A DNA stretch of 62,030 bases, filler included, from Sluysia triapertura (taxonomy: Eukaryota): assembly GCA_046118255.1 (NCBI GenBank). It is 5 parts of 5 records of this genome, joined end to end, with 100 filler letters (N's around TTAATTAATTAA, not from the genome) between each part and the next. Parts side by side here need not be neighbours in the genome. Positions count along the whole stretch, not along the records: positions 11,377 to 24,324 come from JBJNIA010070173.1; 4 more parts are not named here. One strand, 5' to 3'. The translations under genes and the position numbers were made by a program. Below the pieces are notes generated by a model that did no database searches, was not told where the DNA came from, and worked only from the letters and a program-made list of their open reading frames with translations. Shown one piece after another: positions 11,377 to 24,324 of this stretch (the stretch's first letter is position 1; each line of letters starts with the position of its first letter).

Positions 11377-11559
11377 GAAGTAATTTCGAAAGTAGTAATT
11401 TCGAAAATTTTTTATTAGATTTGAAAATTAATTCGGGCGACAAGAGGTTAATACTAAAGATCTTTGTAGTCATGTTTTTAATTTTATTTATAATTTTTAC
11501 AATTTTAAATTCATTGTTATTAAAACAACATTTAACTTAAATTTTAAATTTAAATGCAA

Positions 11560-11830
11560 ATCATTATTACATCACTTACAAATTCAGTGTAATATACTAA
11601 TTTTTAATCCTTTCACTTATTTTTCGTAAAATTATTGACTTTAAATTTTCTTAATAATTTATTTTAACCTACTCAATTATAAATCAGAGAATCCTTAAAA
11701 ACATTGACCTCTTACACATACAAATTTCTAAAATTGAGCGGCTAGCCCTAGTCGGTAAGTCTAGTACGTTGATGGACTCACAATAATTAATCTTTTATTC
11801 TTAAGACTAAGTTAAGTAAAACTCTAGCAA
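11560..11830 (+). mobile_element. Degenerate copy of LTR family L1
   Basis: Core GCGGCTAGCCCTAGTCGGTAAGTCTAGTACGTTGATGGACTCACA at about 11738-11782, followed by TTTTATTCT as in the other copies. Ends are approximate. Confidence 0.55.
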
Positions 11831-14745
11831 TATTAAAATTAAAGCTTTTCTTGTCTTTAATTTTGTAACTTTAATTATTTTAATGAATACATTTTCCCCT
11901 CATTAAAACGGGATTAAAATAATTAATAAAGATTTTAGAGTTTACGGTTTATAATCTCACGAGTAAAATCTTCCTTAAAATTAATCAAACTTACTAATTT
12001 TAATGAATAATGGTGCAAAAATATTTCCATGAAGGAGAGTTGTATAAATTGATTCTTTAATCAAATAATTTGCGTGGAAAAAAATGAAATTGCTTGTTGT
12101 TCTTGTGATTGAATTGATACTGGTCGTCAGTCAGTCACAATCAAATAGAATTCCTGAAAATTTCAGAATGTACTAAAATTTTCGTTTTCTTTTTTTAGAA
12201 ATTTTGTAACTTGATGGTTTGTGATGACAACCTATAGTCACTAGATCAATTTCCTTCAAATAAGAGTATCCACAAAAATCAATTACCATTGTGAATTATT
12301 TCACTTCACCAAATCATTTATCACCGAGTCGCATTCAACGTCGATGACTGATCACTGCCGAGTATTATTTAATTTTATAAAATTACAAGATTCTAATTTA
12401 TTAAATTTTTATTTGAAATCATCACCATCTATTTATACATAAAATTTATTATATAATTTAATACAAATTGAGCCAATAAAACAATAAATACGAGTTTAAA
12501 TTATTATTAAGACGAAATATAAAAACGACAACTTCTAACTAATTTTTTTTATAATTATACAACTATAATGTGTATCGAAAAATGTAAATTTATCAATTGA
12601 TAAACAATTAGGTAATGACAGAATCATTATCAATCCTCTAAATACAATACAAGGATTCCAGTTGGTAATAAAAATGATAATCTTTTACATGGTATTATGA
12701 TTTTTGCAATAACCGATTTTTACGATATTTCGTGACAGAACACAATAATAAATGAAACAAAATTTATATGAAATTGGCATAATAGAGGATTTATTGTATT
12801 GCTACTACCAACGAATTCTTTCAAATTTTAAATAATAATGATAATATTATTATTAATCATCTGAAAATGAATAAGTATTAGTATGAAGATATTGATACGC
12901 AGATACGTATTGAAACTATTAATATGAAGCCTTAGTAGTAATATTGTGTTGTTATTACAGTAGACATGTATTGAAGTATGCAGTGGCTGAAAATTAGAAT
13001 AATATTTAAAATTATAAATATTAAATAAATACAATTTATTAGAGAATAAAATTGGACATTGCAGGAAAATTAATTATAAAGAAAATTGAATACATAGGAA
13101 TTATTATGGAATAGATGAAACCAAATCACTGGCTGGAATTTTGCACTAGCAAAGACTACTAGAATAACGAAAATATTTTAAAAGTTTAAAGCACTGGTAA
13201 GAAAATGCTTGAATTTTAGAATTGATTTTCGCTGTATAAGTGACAAACCAGTGGAGCTTTCAGAGCTTTTATTTAATATTGGTAAAGACGATTTTAGTGG
13301 CGGTAGTGAACTCTAAATCTACACATCGTAATCACAAAGACATTTCATCACAAATCAACACTTCATACATTGCTAATCAAGTTACTCGATATATTCAAAA
13401 TACAAATTCAGTTATAATTTATAAATACAAAAAATTCATCATTATTGTTATAATTGCTAGTGTTTTATATTTATCTTATACTTAATAGCAAATTAGCTGA
13501 GAGATCGGTCCACCTAATAAGTACGCACTATACCACTGTTGGAGACGTATTATTAGGATTTTACAAAAAATTTATTTTAACTTAATTCGCAAGCGAATGC
13601 AACTTAATAAGTTGAAATCAATCTTTTTAGGTTTAAGATTTTACTAAATTACACAACCCTTTATTTTATTTATATTCCACAACCCTTTTATTAAGGTGTT
13701 GTCACAAAATAGGAATTTTAATTAACTATTTATTGAGTTGCACAATTCTTTAAATCAACCAGTATTTTAAAGTAACTTAATCAAAAAATTCAATACTTTA
13801 TATTAAATTATCAAACTAAAAAATACTATACGATGTTAATAACAAAAAACTATTGTACAAACTGTAGACAGACATAATAATAAAATGTTTAAAATAATTC
13901 AATATTGGAATTTTAATTTAAGATTACCCAACCCTATTTAAGGTGTTGGTACGAAAAATGAACAATGATTTTAAGTTTGATTTTGGTATTCCCACTTAGG
14001 GTGAACACGTGTGAAACCTATAAATAAAAAATTAATTTGCAACTTTTGAAGACATCATGGAACTCAGGAAACTGCAATTTAACTTGAAATCTTAAACTTG
14101 TTTTCTTAAAAATTGGCCTTCTTACTCGAATTCTTAATCTATTTATACTAAATGTTAATAACTTACCTATTTAATTATTTTCTTAAATAATTATTTCTTT
14201 TGTTTTCTAAAATATTATATTTAATATTTTTTCCTTTGTTCTTAAAATTAAATAATTCTTTTCTTTAATATTTTTCCTTTGTTCCTAAAATTAAATAATT
14301 CTTTTCTTTATACCTAAAATATTTAAAATTTTTCTTAATTTAAACAAAACTTACAAAATTAATTTATATTTTTATTTTTAATTTATATTTTTTATTTTTA
14401 ATATTTTTATATTTTTTTATTTTTAGTATTTTTTAATATTTTATGTATAATAATATTTCTAAATATTCACAAACATCATAAAACGTATAACTCTTACATA
14501 ATAAAGACTTTCACAATATTAATTATTATAATAGTTTTCAAGTTATCGAATAATAATAATAAACCGTTATAATAATTCTGCATTGTAATTTTCTAATTAT
14601 TTTTGTAATAACAGTTTTCCTTTTCGTTCTCTTCTTGTTTGTATGTATGCATGTTTAGTTTTATGCACGTTTTTGTCGTTTTTCCGCATGCACAAATACT
14701 TTCTTCATATTCATCCCAAAAATATAATGAAGTATCTGTCGATAC

Positions 14746-15145
14746 ATGATAATAAAATTTCCCTATAAGCCATATCCTTAACAGTTGTCAATGATGAAGA
14801 TAATAGTTAATGGACTTAATTCTAGAAACAATTGTCTTTTTGAATCACCAACTGGTACTGGAAAGACCATGATAATATTATGTTCAACTTTGGAATGGCT
14901 TAGAAATTATAATGAAATTTCAACCTATGCTGACAAAAAAAATGAAGACCGTACGAATTATTTAAGCATCTAGAACCCACAAGTAGGTTTTTCAAGTTGT
15001 TCGTAAATTAAGTAATTGGGAGTCGTCGTTACAATTCCATAAACACTAAGGCGCTTAATTCAAATAATAGTGATCAAATATGCAGGGATCTCTGTGATGA
15101 AAATTTATGTATTTTTAGAAACAATGTATCTAAGAAAAAAAATTG
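14746..15145 (+). pseudogene. FANCJ/BRIP1-like (XPD-family Fe-S helicase) 5' fragment, pseudogene
   Basis: [38 protein letters not shown] (Q motif plus Walker A), then II*ASRTHK*VFQVVRKL (motif Ia) and IGSRRYNSIN...QICRDLCDENLCIF (Fe-S region). It has stops and frameshifts and ends at the 3' end of the retrotransposon. Confidence 0.8.
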
Positions 15146-15149
15146 TAGA

Positions 15150-18100
15150 TAATGTACAATAATATAAATAATATACAAACTAAAAACATAAATCTAAAAC
15201 GCACAATAAAAAGATAATAATAATAATACCGAAAATATATTAATTAAAATTGAAAACAGTCGCTCGAAGGCAGTTTTAATATAAAAATGATCAGTCAAGA
15301 GGATTAGAATGTAAAATCACATAAAAGTTAATAATTTATAATATTGTTTATCTATGCAGGATCAGCAGCAGCAGCAGTAACTGTATCTGGAACCACATTT
15401 GGGCTTGGAAGTTTTGGGTACCGAGAAAGAATGTGATTGACGTAGATGTGATATGACATCTTCACCATATCCAAAGAGATGTCTACCAAGAGTTTGTTAA
15501 TAACGTGTTTATTGAATTTGAATTTTTTAAGGATAGCTACTTTTTCTGGGTTCATTGTGCCAAGTATTGGGAATATTAGGGTGAAAATTTTAACTTTACA
15601 ACGAACTATTTTACTTAGATGTTGAGAGAAAGATTAATATTTTAAGGAATTTTTTTGTGAATATCAGGGTTTTAACATCAATTAAGTAGTAACACTTGTC
15701 AAATTTAAACAGTAAGTCAGGGAGTTGCCTTTTAATTTCATCAGAAACATCAGAGAAATTGGAAAAATGAGTGCACTGAATATCGCAATCTACATCAATA
15801 CCATTATCTTGGAGAAAGTTTGTAACAAGTATGAGTTCAAGACTGTGGCGCATAGTGATAAGGCTAGAATTTAAGGTGTAATGATTAAGTACATGTGTAG
15901 CAGATTCACATTTGAATGTACATCTTCGATAATTTCTAGGAATGTTAAATTTCCAGTTCTGCCCAGTAAAGTTAAGTGCTAGAGTATTCGTTCGTGTTTT
16001 AAGTAGAAAAAAGAAAGTGTTATTAGGAAGCTCAGCATTCAACTACAGTCTATTTGTGATGCGAAATTGTGCAAGGGATGAGCTGAGCAGGGATTGACAC
16101 TTCAAGGATTGCCAACGATAGAAATGAGATAACCCAATTAGTTGGTGGAAAGCCTGAGTAAGGTCATCCTTTTCATCCTCTGTGAAAGAATACAACGTAT
16201 CTTGAAGGGAAAGATTGATAGAAAAGGAATCTTCAGCAAAGGCAAACAAAACATGAATATTATGTTTAGATTTCAATGCTTTACAGCAATCCCTAACATT
16301 AGGTCAAAGCGTAGATTTAGAGGGTTGTAATCAAGTCAGGATTCCGAAAGTATAGTTTGGCATCTAATTTAAGGTAATCAAGAGAAAAATAGCGTAACGT
16401 TTTATCACTAGAGGTAAAAATTCTGAAGCAGTGAAGTACTGTTTGAATTAAGTATTCTCTGTGGTATAGTCAACAGTGGTATAGAATAAGTCAATAGAGG
16501 TAGAGCGAAAATATAATTCAAGGGTAGGTAGAAGAAGGTTTCTAAAACTTCTATCGAAAGAAGGAGTATAATTTTCAATATTTGAATCATTAGAGTGCAT
16601 TTTGCCTTTCCAAGCTGGGTTCTAAAAATTTTGCATTCTCTAAAACGATAAGGAAATCGTGAAAGTATAAAGATTGTTATTGCCCTTATTTTCTGTACTG
16701 GATGAAGGCGAGAGTTTAAAATCTTTGAAGAATCAGAGAGAGTAGTTTGAAGTAGAGATATTATTGATAGATGTTTAGCACTACCAATGTTTGAGCCGAG
16801 ATAGGTGTAGTGATTTTTAGAATCAATAATAGGAACTGGAATGTTATAAATACTCAAAGATGGTTCTATATTTTTCTTAATAGTATTCAGATAACCACAT
16901 TTATCAGGGCGAAATTTCAGATTAATGTAAGAAGAAATACTGGAAAGGTTCCTCTTATATGGTGTCGATTTTCTTCTGGAGGGATGTTCTTTTCTGTTTT
17001 AAGTTTAGAAGGCACAGCATGATAGGCAGTTTCCAAGGCAGCTGTAGAATCAATAGCACCAGAGAAAAGAAGGGAAATGGCATGCAGTAGAATTGGATGA
17101 ATTTTCGTATTCTTTTTAGACTGGTGTGATTCAAGAATTTCATCAATAGATGAAAGTAATATTAAAAGTAATATTGAAAGTATCAGTAAGATTAAAAGGT
17201 CAATGTAAAATCTAGCATACTAATAGGAAAAATGTAAAATGCAATATCCACAGAAAACACTATCAGAAGGTTGGACGGAGGCATTAAGAAGGTTACACTG
17301 AACAATCGAAAGGGAAATATCATCATTATCATCAAGGAAGGAAAATTTATTAACGATGGAATTCAAAACAGTATGCAGTTGAGTAAGATTATACTTATTG
17401 TCGAACTAAGAGGATCATAAAGATAAGAAGAATTGGTAACTCGATCTGCTATAAAGTGAAGCCAATGATTTTGTTCCCAAAGTATATATAATTCTCCATT
17501 GGAACATTCGTGCAGATCACCAGCTAGAAGAAATATAGAACAAACAGGCTTAATTATCTTGGTTGTAGAACAGAGGCAAGAATTTATCCTATGAAATGCT
17601 TCAACTGCATACTGTGATAGTCAATCAGACAGTTTATCACTTTCCGTGACAGGAATATCTACAAGTCTATCAAGTTGAAGGGAAAAGTCAGTAATAGTTT
17701 GAAAATGATTAAAAAGAAAAGAGACGGTCATGATTTGAGAGCAGTGTGAGCAAAAGAAACAGACATCTTTTGGATTTTGTGAATGAGTAGCCAAATGTCG
17801 AATTAATTTATTATTGGAACCAGTTAGAGTAAAAGTTTTAAAACATCGATCAATAAGGCATTGTGCAAGGCAAGTAGAATGATTGAAATAGAGTGATAAG
17901 ATAAAGCAAATGAAACTGCACTAACACCAGCAAGTTTCTTTTCAAAAACACTAACTCTGGTGCAATGTTTTTGTTGAAACAGGCGAAGAATAAATCCACA
18001 AACTAAGGAACCGCAATCATAACAATTTGTGTGTAACGAATGGGGGCGGGGAGGAATAACGGAGTAAGATGGATGATGGTAAGAGAGAAAATTCTGAAAG

Positions 18101-19900
18101 AAATTTCTGCACTTTGGAGAGTTGAACAGCATCAAGATCATTGGAGAGGGGATCAAATAATTCTGCGAATGCAATAATTTTATAGGCAACAACCAAGAAC
18201 CAATGTTTATGATGGTTGAAGATAAAGAATAACTTCGTTGAAGCAGCTGCAATATTTTTGTTAATGAAGGCTTGATGAGTAGGAGAACTACGAAAAAAAG
18301 ATTCTATAGCAAAATCGGAAATAAAGAAGTGTGAAGGGGGTATCTAAACTAGAAACAAACTCAACGATATCATCCGATGCGAAAAGATAAGTAGAATTGC
18401 TGATATCATTGGGTGAAGAAGCAAAGCGAACTCTGGGCTCTAGTTTTTTTTTCAGGTTCTGAAGATATCGCAACTTAAGAATTCTGGAATCCATCCTAAC
18501 TGGAAGATATGTATCATCTTCGAAAAGAAATTGAAGACCATCTAAGAAGTCATCATTAACGGAGTGAGAAGGTAGAGTTTCAGAAGTTAAACTTTCATTC
18601 TCTGTAAGAAAATCAGAATTAGGAGAGGATTCTGAATCAAGAATAATTCAAGAAGGTTTAGCAAGCATATCAGAAGAAGTGGCAATAGTTGGTGTTGTAA
18701 AATCATCATTACACACTAGTTCATTAGCTTTAGAAAAATCATCATTATGCAACAAATCATTAATTTCAATTTTAATGGCATTATTATGCAATTTATTAAA
18801 TTGATTAAAAATATAAGTAATTTTTATTACGTCATTGCGTAATTGATCAGGAAAGTTCTTTATGAAATAAGGACTTATCATTAATTAATAATTTATTGCT
18901 GAGAGAACGATTAAGTTTTCTAACAATGGGAATAGTTTTACTAGAAAGGTTTTTTAAAGCAGTTTTGGTGAGCGTGACCAGCTTTGGTTGCTTAACATAA
19001 AGGTAAGAGATGGAATTGTTACCATATAAAGCTTGGAATTCGTTATTAATACGACTAAGATAGATAGAAGAAGTGTGAACAAACTCATCAGTTGTTATAA
19101 TGTGACTTAAGTTAGCAAAAGAGTAAAAAGAATATTCCGAATGTGTTTACAAAATGAAGGAGGGAATGGAGTTCAGAAATTATGAGAAGAAGAAGAAAGT
19201 TTCTTAATTCATAAGCAATCCGATCAGAAGCAAGCTTAGGAAGTAAAGATCGAAAAAATGAGTTAAAATAGAAAAAGGCGAAGCAGTAACCTTTAATTTT
19301 AGTTTGAAAATTTAAAAAGTTTAAAAAATGGGATTTTAAATTTAAATTTTGGCACAATGAACATAAACTAATCTTATCTGGAGCAACATCATTCTTACTT
19401 CTAGGGTCATGTAGTTCTCGAGCAGGAACCATAGTTGGGATTGAATGCAGTGCCGCTGTAACTTGCTGCGCTGATTTCTTCGGTTTTCGAGCCCCTCCGC
19501 TACTGGGTAAAACATGCGGAGCATTATTTTCATCAGCTGGAATGATCTTCTTTTTCTTCCTGTTGCATTGATTATGTAGCTGTAATTCCTTCTTCGTATT
19601 CTCAGCCTTCTCCATTGCAGTAGTTCGATTACACGTGGAGCAGAGTAGAAACCATAAAATCGTCGGACTCCTTCGCGACTAAGTCCATCGTGAATACGCG
19701 AAGTTTTGATATTCGAAGGTAATCGTGTTTGATCCATATCTATGTTGTCGACTACCATTTTCGAATCCCTCCGCGACTGGGTTTATCATGTATCCACAGA
19801 GTTCCAAAATTTCGATAGCGAGGAGTTGGTACTGATCATGGAAATGTTGTTGGAATGTTTTGCAGGTCCACCTGCCCAATTTTGACAATTGAACAAAATA
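15150..19900 (-). mobile_element. Degenerate RLE-type non-LTR retrotransposon A (NeSL-like) with two Ulp1-like protease domains, zinc fingers, RT thumb, CCHC finger and PD-(D/E)xK endonuclease
   Basis: On the minus strand, in order: protease 1 (KHWFLVVAY...FDPL at about 18200; TNCYDCGSLVC at about 18010); C2H2-type finger CLIDRC...RHLATH and CSHC (17690-17865); protease 2 (NHWLHFIAD...YDPL at about 17465; QPSDSVFCGYC at about 17250); RT end LKFRPDKCGY / YTYLGSNIG (16790-16930); YRRCTFKCESATHVLNHY; RQLPDLLFKFDKCYYLIDVK. Many stops and frameshifts. Ends are approximate. Confidence 0.85.
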
Positions 19901-20224
19901 ATAATTTTGCTAATTGGGTAAGATTATACTGAAAACATTGAAATAAGATTCTTGATGTCCGACGATCACAAAGTTTAAATAAGACGTTTCTGGTAAATAT
20001 ATCATTCATATTTGCCTAAGAAAGTCAAAGAAACAGTTTGTAGAGCAAAATTTCTATATATTTATTGATATAATGCGACTGACAACTTATATAAAATCAA
20101 TGTAAAAACAAAAATTTCATAATACTATTAAATTTCTTTAAAAAGCTTATTATTAAAAATTAAAAATATTAATAAAGCTCAGAGTTTTTTATTTAATTGT
20201 GTATATATTTTTTTAGAATAAACG

Positions 20225-22094
20225 TCAAACTTCCGCCACACTTCGACTTCTGTTCCTATAAAAGCTGGTGTTAAGCAAGGATGTCCTTTGTCTATGACAC
20301 TTTTTTTGCCATGCTGTCTTCATACATCAACCTTAAATTTCACCCTGAAAATGTGGCTTTCTTAACACCGTCAAGTTTGAAGTGCCCCTTACTATTTATA
20401 ATACCCATTTTCCTATCATTAACTCCAAAGTAAACTATACTTATCTCGGATCGAAAATTGGAAGTGCAAAACACTTATCAATTAAGTCTTTACTTAACAC
20501 CGCCCTCTAACTGCACTAAAATAATAGGATCCCGCCTTCATCCTGTTCATAAAATTAGAGCCATCAAAATCTTTATCTTGTCTTGTTCTCCTTATCGATT
20601 TACAGCTTACAAGATATTAAGAAGCAACTCGAGAACGCACAATTGCACTACAATGCTGAGGATACTAATAGAGACACTCCTCCTTTCGACCAAAGCTTTA
20701 GAAACATCCCAAGATCCGCTCTTCCGGTCATCGCCCATTGACTACTTTTACACTACTATTGATTACGGAGGACTCGGCTTTACTTCTCCCTATAGCGAAT
20801 ACTTCAATCAAACTATAGTCCGCTGCTTCCGTATCTTTACCTCTGGCGACAATACTCTTCAATGTTTTTCTCTAGAATATCTTAAGGAAGACTCTAAACT
20901 ATACTATAGGAAACCAGATATTATTACGACACTCAACTGGCTTTCTGGCATAACTAATTCTGAAATGTACCCTCCAAAGTCAACCCTGTTGTCCAACGTT
21001 AGGGACTGCTGTAAGTCTCTTAAATCAAAGCATGATATACAAGTCTTGTTCGCTTTTGTAGATGATTCCTTCTCTATCAACTTAACTCATTTACTTTCTC
21101 CAAAGATGAAAAGGATAACGTCACTCAGGCTTTTCATCAACTGAGAGGTTTGTCTCACTTTCTACGATGAAAGTCCTTGAAATGCCAATCTCTTCTAACT
21201 TCTTTCCTGGCACAGTCTCGCCTTACAAATAGAATGCTCATGAGTTCCGAAATCCCAGATAAGACTTTTTCTTCTTACTCAGAGCCCGAACAAATACTTT
21301 ATCTTTAAACCTCACTGTGCGAAACTTTAAAGAAAATCTTCCCATTAACTGTCATCGATGTTCTTTTAAGTGTGAATCTGCACCTCACGTTCTTAATCAC
21401 TGTCCTTTCAATTCCAGCCTTATCACTTTGCGCCACAACTTAGCATTTGGACTTGTTGCTTCTCTCTTCAGGGATTATGGCATCGATGTCAACTGTGATG
21501 CTCAACGTGTCCTCTTTTCTAACCGACTAGATGTTCCTGACTACATCAAACGTCAGAACCCTGACTTACTCTTTCTATACAATGATTGTTACTTTCTTAT
21601 TGACATTAAAATCCCTTTTGATAAAATCGAGTCTTATCCAGATATTCTTACGGAAGACTCAGTGAAATAATCACAATTCTCCATGCATCTTAGCAGAATC
21701 GTCAGGCGTAAGGTCAAAATATTTACCTTAATCTTTCCGGCGCTGGACACAATGAGCCCCGAGAGTATTAGCATACTTACAAGTTTCAAATTCAGTAGAT
21801 CATCCATAAATAAATTGCTTATTGACATTTCTATGGGAATGGTAAAGATGTCATATAGAATATACATGAACCATTTCTTGTCCCGGTACCCAACAATCAG
21901 ACAATCAACAAATACAGCTAAAACAGCCACACCTCCAGGAGAGGCTTTAGTCCACATACACCAAATTCTGCCCTTCTGAATCCAAAGGAAGATTCTGAAG
22001 AAGTATCCAGTTCGAAGAAAAAATCATTATTTGTACAGCCTTCGAGCAAAGATTTTAGTTAAAATATTTAACACATTTTTGCTATTACTATTAC

Positions 22095-22148
<54 letters not shown>
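20225..22148 (+). mobile_element. 5'-truncated RLE-type non-LTR retrotransposon B, same family as A
   Basis: VPIKAGVKQGCPLSMTLF (RT domain 4), SRLHPVHKIRAIKIFILS, GGLGF, CHRCSFKCESAPHVLNHC and RQNPDLLFLYNDCYFLIDIK. Collinear and clearly similar to element A. Shares the 3' UTR motif GCCTTCGAGC and is followed by (TAT)n at 22083-22148. Confidence 0.88.
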
Positions 22149-22149
<1 letters not shown>

Positions 22150-22150
22150 T

Positions 22151-22390
22151 TGTAACGTTACTTTATTTCATTTTAAGGTTCGATACTAAAACAGTATCTT
22201 CGTAAAATATACTTAAAATACATTTACTAAAATACTTTGAAACTTTTAACAGTTTCACGGAAAATTCTTTTTTAAACTAATTTATCTAAAGATTTAATTA
22301 ACTAACAGTTAGTTATGAAAAATTTTATAAATTTATTATTGATCCTATTTTCTCATTGTGTTTGATAAATATACCTTCACGGAAAACGTC

Positions 22391-22447
<57 letters not shown>

Positions 22448-24050
22448 GAACAGATATTAATTTTCATGGTTTTTAAATACGTAAATTTATCACTATAAGT
22501 AAAGATTTAATGAAAGTATAATTTTGACAACCTAAGATCATTTATCTCCAACACAAATCCTTTTAATAGGATTTCCGTAAAATAATTTATAAACGATTTT
22601 CATTGTTATAGTTAAAATTACAAACCGCTTTCAGTGTTGTAACTAAAATACCTCCAGATCTTGATTATTGTGAATTGTCCTTATAAAATTGAAAAGCAAC
22701 TAAATACCCACAGACCTTAACTTTAGAGCATTTGTAAACTTAAGCAAACATTAAGATATTTTCCTTAGTGAAAATCCTTTCAATTATATCTATAAATCAA
22801 ACGGCTATCCCTAACTGGTAAGTCTAGTACGTTGGTGGACTCACATTAAAATCCTACTTTATTCTATCTCACTTTACATTCCCACATAAAATCAACTGGT
22901 GCCCGGAGTGAGGAACAGTAGTGAAACAATACTTTGTAAACATAAAGATTAAGAAGAATTTAACGACCAGTATTGATATATTATAAAATTAAAGAATAAT
23001 TTGAGAATCAATATTAAGATTTAAGTATTTAAGCATTTAAGGAGAAGCTTTAGACTAATTGTATTACGATTTTATTAAGAATAAGTTAAAATTTGAGCAA
23101 AATTATTATTCCTTAAGTTGATTATTAATAGATTAAGTAAGTTTTAAGAAAAATAGATAAACAAATTGTACTACACAATAACTGCAGATCAAAATTAAGA
23201 AATTGTATGGATATACCTAATGATTTTAAAGAATATATGGCTCATTTAGCCAGAGAAATGCGTCCATTAATGGAATTACGCGAAATGAAAAAATTGACGG
23301 AGTAGAGGAAGATCTCTGCGATTTCTTATTCGAATATGAAAGCACGGCTGAAGCAAACGGCTGGAATTAAGCCGAAAAAATAAAACGAATCCAAAATTAT
23401 TTAACTGGAGTAATAATAATAAACAGACTTGGAATGAATTTGTTAACGCATTTACTGAAGAAAGATCACTTGGTGACATGAGAAAATATTATGTTAAAAT
23501 GTTAAACTCTAGGATACAAAAGCCAAATGAATCTGTAAATGAATACGCTTGTGCTCTTAAAAGCCTTGTTGCTAGAGCTAAAATCCCTGACGATAAAAAG
23601 GAAATAACATTAATAGATAAATTAAAAACTGGGTTACGACCAGAATTAATAACATATGTTACCTTAATAGAAGGAAAACATTTTAAGGAAGTAATTAAGA
23701 AGTGTAGATCTTTCATATAAGTATAAAAAGAATAAGAATAATATTGATTATATAAGTGACAATGAAGAAAAGGAGATAAAAGTCCGAAATTAAGAAGAAA
23801 TAATTATGATGATAATAAATTTAATTATGAAGGATATGACAGTAACTACAATAGCCCACGCAGAGGCAATGATAATTCAAATTCAAATAGAAATAATTTT
23901 AGAGGTAATTCAAACAATTATAGAAGTAAGTCAAATAATTATAATTATAGAGAAAATAATAATAGAGATAGAGGATTCCAAAACAATAGAACAAATAATT
24001 ATGTAACAATGAGATTAAATACCTAATAATAACGGAATTACTAGAACATG
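22151..24050 (+). mobile_element. Ty3/gypsy-like LTR retrotransposon remnant (family L1): 5' LTR, PBS and degenerate gag
   Basis: LTR from about 22151 (TGTAAC) to 22886 (CCCACA), delimited by similarity to the solo copy at 25647-26240. PBS at 22897. Gag-like text DFLFEYESTAEANGWN and RIQKPNESVNEYACALKSLV...LKTGLRPEL, followed by an Asn/Arg-rich tract. Confidence 0.8.
22897..22914 (+). promoter_or_regulatory. Retroelement primer-binding site, probably elongator tRNA-Met
   Basis: TGGTGCCCGGAGTGAGGA has reverse complement TCCTCACTCCGGGCACCA, a CCA-ended tRNA 3' end resembling animal elongator tRNA-Met (..TCCTCACACGGGGCA-CCA, from memory). Confidence 0.7.
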
Positions 24051-24324
24051 GAAATACCAAATTGGGAATTGAAAATTTGCTTCTATTTATAGGTAAATTT
24101 TAAACAACCATCTTACTTGTTTATTAAATTTTTTTTATTTTATTATTTTAAACTTAAAATTTATCATATCAAATTTTGTTGATTAATGTAAAACTTATTT
24201 TAGAAATTATTTATTTTAAAATATTATTTTATAATAAAAATAATAAAATCAAGTAAGGAAATTAAAAAATATAATAATAATTTATCACATAAAATTTAAC
24301 CCTTTGAGTGCCAACAAGCGCGAT

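Follow-up and report, generated by a model that had tools for sequence, protein, structure and literature searches.

The window analysed here is a stretch of 62,030 nucleotides from Sluysia triapertura (GenBank assembly GCA_046118255.1), and our subject is the element on the minus strand of the part that comes from record JBJNIA010070173.1 (positions 11377-24324, counted along the window). By its motifs, this element is one of the non-LTR (LTR, long terminal repeat) retrotransposons, specifically a long interspersed nuclear element (LINE) of the restriction-like-endonuclease (RLE) type, and it belongs to a multi-copy family. The RLE assignment rests on motifs, with no apurinic/apyrimidinic endonuclease (APE) domain, and we know of no Pfam model for RLE. 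Two Ulp1-like protease domains of the Pfam family Peptidase_C48 (D1 and D2) together occupy 17223-18430, with two C2H2 zinc fingers between them and an in-frame TGA directly before D2; D2 is followed by what is left of the reverse transcriptase (RT), a CCHC knuckle, and the endonuclease (Table 1).

The copy in the window is dead: it carries frameshifts, and about 1 kb of its RT core is gone near 16940. Between 15377 and 19376 the GC content is uniform at about 0.33 (0.20-0.28 outside) and the GC skew is positive and constant, and the reading frame of a near-intact relative, L001, is colinear with the minus strand from 18036 down to 15379 (tblastn). At the 3′ end, near 15215, the copy finishes in a short (TAT)n run, and it can be aligned with a second family copy as far as this trinucleotide repeat. 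No similarity to any relative was found for the 5′ parts, so that the 5′ end can be placed only roughly, within 18650-19376. In tblastn, residues 620-767 of L001 end at 16935 and residues 1106-1217 begin at 16947; approximately 340 residues, including the RT core, are therefore missing from this copy, which keeps only the thumb part of the RT. The CCHC and endonuclease motifs are invariant in the alignment of the family. Copies of the family are numerous in the source organism (253 contigs of one run were placed on the window), and contigs from this organism span D2, the fingers, and D1 together. Those of high depth carry small indels relative to the window at 18335, 17889, and 17393-17400, which are the frame changes of this copy. 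The window copy itself is an ordinary dead repeat; it is its family that has an unreported layout and, in addition, a conserved stop of the recoding type.

Table 1. Positions of the features of the minus-strand element and of the second family copy, with the basis on which each was placed.
Feature	Position	Strand	Basis or remark
Decayed RLE-type LINE	15215-19376	minus	GC content and skew; tblastn; 3′ alignment with second copy
D1, first Peptidase_C48-like domain, over three frames	17950-18430	minus	Profile built from relatives
D1 string FASDDIVEFV	18354-18383	minus	
D1 HW (His)	18200-18205 (18203-18205)	minus	
D1 Asp of FDPL	18152-18154	minus	
D1 His replacing the oxyanion Gln	18031-18033	minus	
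D1 DCG (Cys)	18010-18018 (18013-18015)	minus	
KKLAGVS, likely remnant of a Gly-Gly motif	17920-17940	minus	Motifs of relatives at the matching place
Two C2H2-type zinc fingers	17705-17860	minus	Direct reading
Finger 1, C-x4-C...H-x4-H	17783-17860	minus	
Finger 2, C-x2-C...H	17705-17761	minus	
In-frame TGA, followed by CTA	17621-17623	minus	Between finger-bearing part and D2-RT-endonuclease
D2, second Peptidase_C48-like domain, over two frames	17223-17620	minus	Small deletion before the His box
D2 start string LSQYAVEAF	17594-17620	minus	
D2 HW (His)	17462-17467 (17465-17467)	minus	
D2 Asp	17414-17416	minus	
D2 Gln	17271-17273	minus	
D2 CG (Cys)	17247-17252 (17250-17252)	minus	
Linker between D2 and RT	16920-17219	minus	Stops at internal RT-core deletion, junction near 16935-16947
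RT C-terminal part (thumb) and linker, frameshifted	16046-16998	minus	tblastn to L001, 55% identity, E 4e-31
CCHC knuckle and restriction-like endonuclease	15614-16042	minus	Direct reading; tblastn to L001, 39% identity, 220 residues
CCHC knuckle, last Cys mutated to Tyr	15878-15928	minus	
Endonuclease PD motif	15707-15724	minus	
Endonuclease D-x-K motif	15671-15685	minus	
Second family copy, diverged, inverted, 5′-truncated	20222-22090	plus	Motifs; alignment with minus copy

The family assignment rests on intact relatives, because the broken window pieces alone reach no Pfam or PDB-sequence threshold: ten of them gave nothing relevant for proteases in Pfam and a weak zf-C2H2_4 match (E 0.69), and the pieces with the His boxes matched no PDB sequence. 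The relatives come from metagenome and Logan contigs. A phmmer search with the thumb of the plus-strand copy against 1.84 billion representatives returned seven matches, the best of which (P0001, E 7e-18) starts within the Cys box of D2 and continues into RT and endonuclease; Pfam RVT_1 is recognized in it and its relatives (E 1e-29). Its contig, L001, is near-intact and encodes an N-terminal region, D1, the TGA, D2, RT, CCHC knuckle, and endonuclease in one frame that is otherwise open across 1,667 codons. Two further searches gave L002-L006 and L023-L026, with fingers, TGA (GAA in L004), D2, RT, and endonuclease. A metagenome scan with the D2 alignment yielded a single true relative, L008. 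Over the approximately 800 residues compared, TGA included, its protein is the same as that of L002, which comes from a separate metagenome; from the same scan, L009-L013 were set aside as unrelated C48 proteins without RT, and L014-L022 are matches of about 20 residues only. A word-based protein search with D2 alone found no match beyond the query itself.

Both protease domains are C48 domains with a Ulp1/SENP-like fold, as judged from profiles and predicted structures. In L001, D1 scores 44.3 bits (E 2.4e-11) and D2 34.8 bits (E 2e-8) against Pfam Peptidase_C48, for which the cut-off is 20.7, and all 10 of the intact D2 domains tested pass it (E 2e-8 to 2.5e-13). The AlphaFold model of L001 D1 has a mean predicted local distance difference test score (pLDDT) of 69 (80-90 in the core) and matches SENP5 (E 5e-8, template-modelling score, TM, 0.67), and the D2 model has a pLDDT of 81 and matches Ulp1 (2hl8, E 4e-5, TM 0.72); the lists of structures for both are headed by clan-CE proteases only. 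Searched against PDB sequences, the D2 profile finds Ulp1 (1euv, 4e-6), SENP1, and adenain (1avp, 2.6e-4). In the window, the domains were sought with hidden Markov models (HMMs) that contained no window rows, the D1 model being built from L001, P0002, and P0006 and the D2 model from six relatives, and both were run against all 531 six-frame pieces of 11377-24324. The D1 model finds its His box at 18020-18343 (E 3e-7) and its Cys box at 17827-18303 (E 7e-5), and the D2 matches lie at 17366-17620 (E 1.5e-10) and 17223-17405 (E 2.8e-4). Since models free of window sequence recover precisely the expected pieces and in a colinear arrangement, the two domains are more than a chance resemblance.

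These results bear out most of the initial annotation. Every string and coordinate that it quoted is reproduced by minus-strand translation, with the motifs scattered over different frames as it said, and its picture of a non-LTR element with two clan-CE, Ulp1-like domains and C2H2 fingers between them agrees with the intact relatives and with the HMMs. The His-Asp-(Gln)-Cys order that it gave is present (H, D, and C in D1 of the window, with H for Gln; H, D, Q, and C in D2), and D1 is SENP/Ulp1-like, as it had proposed. Its likening of D2 to adenain-type proteases does not hold. Profile and structure both place D2 in clan CE, and within it with C48: against Peptidase_C5, L001 D2 reaches 13.9 bits (E 0.045), under the cut-off of 21.3. 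The long Q-x6-CG spacing that had suggested adenain results from the insertion of a single residue, confined to the lineage of the window and L001; elsewhere, D2 has the canonical Q-x-N-x-x-D-C-G. We therefore rejected an adenain-type identity for D2. The division of labor that the annotation suggested, with one protease for processing and the other for deSUMOylation, is a hypothetical one. Two points lie beyond what the annotation had noted, namely that the window copy has no RT core and that the domain shared by all of the clade is D2 and not D1.

D2 stands directly before the RT throughout the clade and retains its His, Asp, Gln, and Cys in 10/10 intact relatives. D1 is confined to the lineage of the window and L001: the ORF1 parts (ORF, open reading frame) of L024 (733 residues), L026 (607 residues), L005, L002, L025, and L023 contain no C48 domain, and no D1-type C48 was seen in L003. 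On this distribution, D2 before RT is the clade-wide state and D1 an extra of the window/L001 lineage. D1 did not arise by recent copying of D2, because the two score just 27 bits against each other within L001; in a tree, with the caveat of long branches, it falls together with the protease at the N-terminus of a sister clade (P0002, P0006, and P0090). Members of this sister clade have a single ORF with an N-terminal C48 domain that keeps its catalytic residues, and after it two degenerate C48-like repeats without them (248-364 and 423-528 in P0002, 258-368 and 434-534 in P0006; domain E 2.5e-5 to 0.1), the last of which adjoins the RT. Tandem C48 arrays, with two domains here and, in the sister clade, an active domain and two degenerate ones, form a natural series for studying how a protease domain is duplicated and retired within a mobile element.

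D1 and D2 belong to one element. Nested insertion, which the initial annotation had named as a way in which its reading could fail, was looked for, and the single open frame of L001, the contigs of the source organism that bridge D2, fingers, and D1, and the uniform GC content and skew over 15377-19376 all speak for a single element.

The boundary between the finger-bearing part and D2 is marked by a TGA that the initial annotation had taken for a decayed TGG. It is not decay: the alignment of the relatives indicates an ancestral TGA that has been conserved. L001, L002 (and its equal, L008), L003, L005, L006, L023, L024, L025, and L026 all have TGA at this codon, so that it is present in ten lineages (the window and nine relatives) from six samples, and the TGA-bearing relatives stand on branches of 0.2-1.4 substitutions per site. 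In each of them it is the sole in-frame stop within 1160-1889 codons. Conservation of the protein begins at the codon directly after it, which is where D2 starts. The RT-based tree, whose alignment retained some D2 columns in some rows, shows a well-supported clade apart from the R2-like proteins of arthropods and others, and puts the TGA-bearing elements into one clade (support 99) with L004 (GAA) nested inside; because of this nesting, one gain and one loss of the TGA account for its distribution. That the window copy is badly decayed and lies among other repeats could speak for two nested or juxtaposed insertions, or for a shared TGA produced by independent decay or assembly error. Given that D1 and D2 share the L001 frame and are joined in the source-organism contigs, that the same TGA recurs in all ten lineages, and that L002 and L008 carry it in two separate metagenomes, we regard any such explanation as extremely improbable.

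The residue replaced is also informative. In the sister clade, the homologous position of the C48 domains at the N-terminus is Trp (W-F-T-D-x-D-I-x-x-Y), as we take it to be in cellular Ulp1 and SENP proteins as well (W-L-N-D), and the TGA aligns with Trp or Glu, not with Cys. Elsewhere in each ORF, Trp is encoded by TGG (15-22 times) and never by TGA. Because Trp is always TGG and the only TGA is at this one site, the hosts do not generally read TGA as Trp, and a general reassignment of UGA to Trp was rejected. The base that follows the TGA is C in 10/10 lineages, the next codon being CTA in 5, CTT in 2, CTG in 2, and CAA in 1, with the context UGA-CUAG in L002. UGA-C is the leakiest stop context. 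The stops at the ends of the ORFs, in contrast to the internal TGA, are TAA or TAG in 6/6 loci checked.

The finger pair just 5′ of the stop codon position recurs in L002-L005 and L023-L026; in L006 only the second finger is visible, since the contig ends a little farther 5′. Upstream of position 1588 in L001, D1 is present and there are no zinc fingers before the TGA, whereas all other members of the clade have the finger pair. After D1 or before the fingers, the relatives carry Gly-Gly motifs, of the form aliphatic- or aromatic-Gly-Gly (IYGG in L001, LVGGG in L005, LVGSG in L002, HAGG in L004, and, at the same place, DYGGG in L023, DFGGG in L024, THGGG in P0002, and RKGGG in P0006). Gly-Gly motifs resemble the sites cut by Ulp1-like and adenain-like enzymes, and we infer from their recurrence that they are putative cleavage sites.

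Taken together, the TGA is probably a leaky stop that sets the amount of enzyme, much as in retroviruses. We propose a programmed readthrough of the UGA that would give a short product and a rarer enzyme fusion, followed by cutting at the conserved Gly-Gly sites, and we hold this to be slightly better than an even bet. Most ribosomes would stop at the UGA and release the finger-bearing product; a minority would continue past the leaky UGA-C(U)A and produce a fusion with D2, RT, and endonuclease, so that readthrough would set the ratio of structural to enzymatic product, as between Gag and Gag-Pol of retroviruses. Trp is among the residues usually inserted at UGA, and its insertion here would restore the normal residue of the C48 domain. 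One or both C48 domains would then cut the polyprotein after Gly-Gly. The wider claim, that this whole clade of RLE LINEs uses UGA readthrough at the Trp codon of a protease together with Gly-Gly cutting, with a second protease added in the lineage of the window, has in our opinion about the same chance of being right as of being wrong.

Of the traits that accompany readthrough, a conserved stop, coding in the same frame on both sides, and a leaky context were all found, and several observations weigh against the proposal. There is no shared RNA structure 3′ of the UGA: L005 alone stands out (z -3.6, with -0.8 to +0.8 in the others) by a perfect 11-bp hairpin at 896-930, one base past the UGA, that is found in no other relative. 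Readthrough of the short-context kind, however, needs no downstream structure. L004 has no stop at all, and the stop is therefore not essential. L003 has no clear Gly-Gly motif. Because L001 has Asn at the Asp position of D1 and the window has His for its oxyanion Gln, D1 is possibly weakly active or inactive, and its residues suggest that it may have little or no activity. Furthermore, the hosts of the metagenome and Logan relatives may have an unusual decoding habit, and AUG-independent reinitiation just past the stop would give the same genomic picture.

The last of these deserves to be stated in full. The UGA could be the true terminator of ORF1, with D2, RT, and endonuclease translated separately by termination-reinitiation or from an AUG-independent start, and with no fusion made. 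Unconventional, AUG-independent reinitiation is established for ORF2 of human L1, and a conserved stop with coding that resumes at the next codon, as well as the lack of a stimulatory RNA structure in common, is just what it would leave behind. Such a separate start, however, does not explain why the stop is always UGA-C while the ORFs end in TAA or TAG. Nor is there a conserved AUG 3′ of the TGA, the first in-frame ATG lying 16-361 codons downstream and past the catalytic His in L001, L002, and L005 (361 codons in L005), or a conserved stop-start overlap of the UAAUG type. The stop also takes the place of a conserved Trp in a folded domain, and an N-terminus one residue into the first helix would be an odd design. 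On balance we consider reinitiation unlikely.

Recoding by other means is more improbable still. A-to-I editing of UGA to UGG on the RNA would yield exactly the Trp expected at the site, and the amber/W site of hepatitis delta virus is a precedent for such editing; it is conceivable and unsupported, there being no conserved double-stranded structure around the site and TGA in all assembled contigs. Selenocysteine, inserted through a selenocysteine insertion sequence (SECIS), is suggested by the Naiad Penelope-like elements, in which in-frame UGA is read as selenocysteine (PMC8557442). In six relatives, Rfam gave no SECIS or other family at E up to 1, and the scan of the window to the same limit gave no SECIS, ribozyme, or rRNA, tRNA, or snRNA target; ARAGORN, too, detected no tRNA in the window. 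Selenocysteine is unlikely at a UGA that, unlike those of Naiad, is not aligned with Cys, and we think the two recoding routes together very unlikely.

What the proteases cut is a separate matter from how they are translated. They could act on host SUMO, ubiquitin, or NEDD8, for instance against SUMO-dependent silencing, or they could be inactive binding modules; in favor of this are their nearest structures, which are deSUMOylases and bacterial effector deubiquitinases, the degenerate repeats kept by the sister clade without catalytic residues, and the Asn in D1 of L001. Gly-Gly motifs that recur at one conserved place of the polyprotein, on the other hand, argue for an internal substrate, and the catalytic residues of D2, kept in every intact relative, argue against inactive modules. 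A role on host targets would be compatible with self-processing, the two being not mutually exclusive, and any activity on SUMO-like proteins would be a predicted one. We rate an explanation by host targets or inactive modules as fairly unlikely, and continue to favor readthrough followed by self-processing.

If this is true, a clade of LINEs has arrived at a convergent copy of the Gag/Gag-Pol strategy, with a leaky stop placed before a cysteine protease and RT. In the usual view, the ORF1 and ORF2 proteins of LINEs come from separate initiation events or from reinitiation, and no protease is required. For the Ulp1-like domain of NeSL-type elements, which has long lacked an explanation, there would then be a testable job, namely self-processing at Gly-Gly. 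There is also a practical side: annotation pipelines split such elements at the TGA or label them as pseudogenes, and intact copies may for this reason be under-reported in repeat libraries.

The second copy of the family, on the plus strand, retains the RT motif (GVKQGCPLS, 20267-20293), the thumb, the CCHC knuckle (21350-21403), the endonuclease, and an (ATT)n end; it has an internal deletion between the RT motif and the thumb and no protease part, and its mean column identity to the minus copy is 78% over the last approximately 950 bases. Two long (ATT)n microsatellites are located at 22082-22150, adjoining the 3′ end of this copy, and at 22395-22447. The trinucleotide repeats at the copy ends may represent a tail or, alternatively, a target made up of a microsatellite. 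Just upstream of the minus element, 19377-19876 is GC-rich (0.44), without GC skew and with long ORFs in two minus frames; it is matched neither by Pfam nor by Rfam, shows no similarity to 5′ parts of relatives, and could be a 5′ untranslated region, part of the target, or another repeat. On the plus strand, a short ORF at 14785-14973 has the Walker-A helicase motif ESPTGTGKT and weak Pfam matches to DEAD and ResIII (E 4e-4 and 1e-3), and probably belongs to a host helicase gene as one of its exons, and an ORF at 23352-23717 matches Pfam Retrotrans_gag above the cut-off (E 1e-5) and represents a fragment of an LTR retrotransposon. Finally, a 56-nt direct repeat (11731-11786 and 22794-22849, 84% identical and 11 kb apart) may be part of another dispersed repeat.

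Among the relatives, a tRNA T-loop-like segment, GGTTCGARYCC, with a flanking stem is found at position 4637 of L002, 4252 of L023, and 4519 of L025. These segments lie approximately 350-400 nt past the ORF2 stop, after short A/T-rich repeats, and in L002 a T-run follows as well. As they resemble the T-arm of tRNA 3′ halves, these three relatives seem to insert into tRNA genes, and the sequences suggest such genes as their targets.

The closest known systems are the RLE LINEs of the NeSL group, in which NeSL-1 of C. elegans and Utopia-1_TSP of Trichinella have one N-terminal Ulp1-like protease (PMC4640811). They share with the present elements the RLE type, zinc fingers, a Ulp1-like C48 domain 5′ of the RT, and, at the C-terminus, a CCHC knuckle with endonuclease, and the tRNA 3′ halves after L002, L023, and L025 fit the tRNA-gene targets described for some families of the group (PMC4640811). 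The likeness is one of layout and description, the RT tree having been made without reference NeSL, R5, or Utopia sequences. In the present clade, the common protease stands directly before the RT and after the fingers, one lineage has an extra C48 domain upstream, and the frame is divided by an in-frame UGA that is conserved; for the NeSL group, no mention is made of a second protease or of a stop (PMC4640811). A literature search, with Repbase and the original description of NeSL-1 outside its scope, found no RLE LINE described with two C48 domains, with a C48 domain immediately ahead of its RT, or with an in-frame stop that is conserved, and a search on readthrough in non-LTR elements gave nothing relevant.

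As proteases, the domains invite comparison with adenain and the poxvirus I7 core protease, which process viral polyproteins after Gly-Gly-type motifs. They share the clan-CE fold, to the extent that the D2 profile reaches adenain itself; D2 differs from adenain in its Pfam family, and its top structures are Ulp1 and SENP. With the Naiad Penelope-like elements, which encode selenoproteins via in-frame UGAs (PMC8557442), the present family shares a conserved in-frame UGA in retroelement ORFs that annotation pipelines take as a stop. Naiad, however, has several UGAs at Cys positions together with a SECIS, whereas the present family has a single UGA, which falls on a Trp position, and a SECIS was not found in the six relatives searched or in the window.

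As to decoding, short-context readthrough takes place at UGA-CUA or UGA-CGG in alphaviruses and several plant viruses, and at UGA-CUAG in animal genes; to our knowledge it is not known from LINEs. The resemblance lies in the UGA followed by C, mostly as CUA, and in the UGA-CUAG of L002, and the difference in the CUU, CUG, and CAA codons that are also present. In organization, the nearest parallels are murine leukaemia virus (MLV), with UAG, and Tca2 of Candida, with gag-UGA-pol (PMC2194720), in which a stop likewise lies between a nucleic-acid-binding part and protease plus RT. For Tca2, the bypass mechanism itself was in question (PMC2194720). MLV has a pseudoknot downstream of its stop, in contrast to the lack of a shared structure here; and both MLV and Tca2 are LTR elements with aspartic proteases, whereas here the stop precedes the cysteine protease of a LINE.

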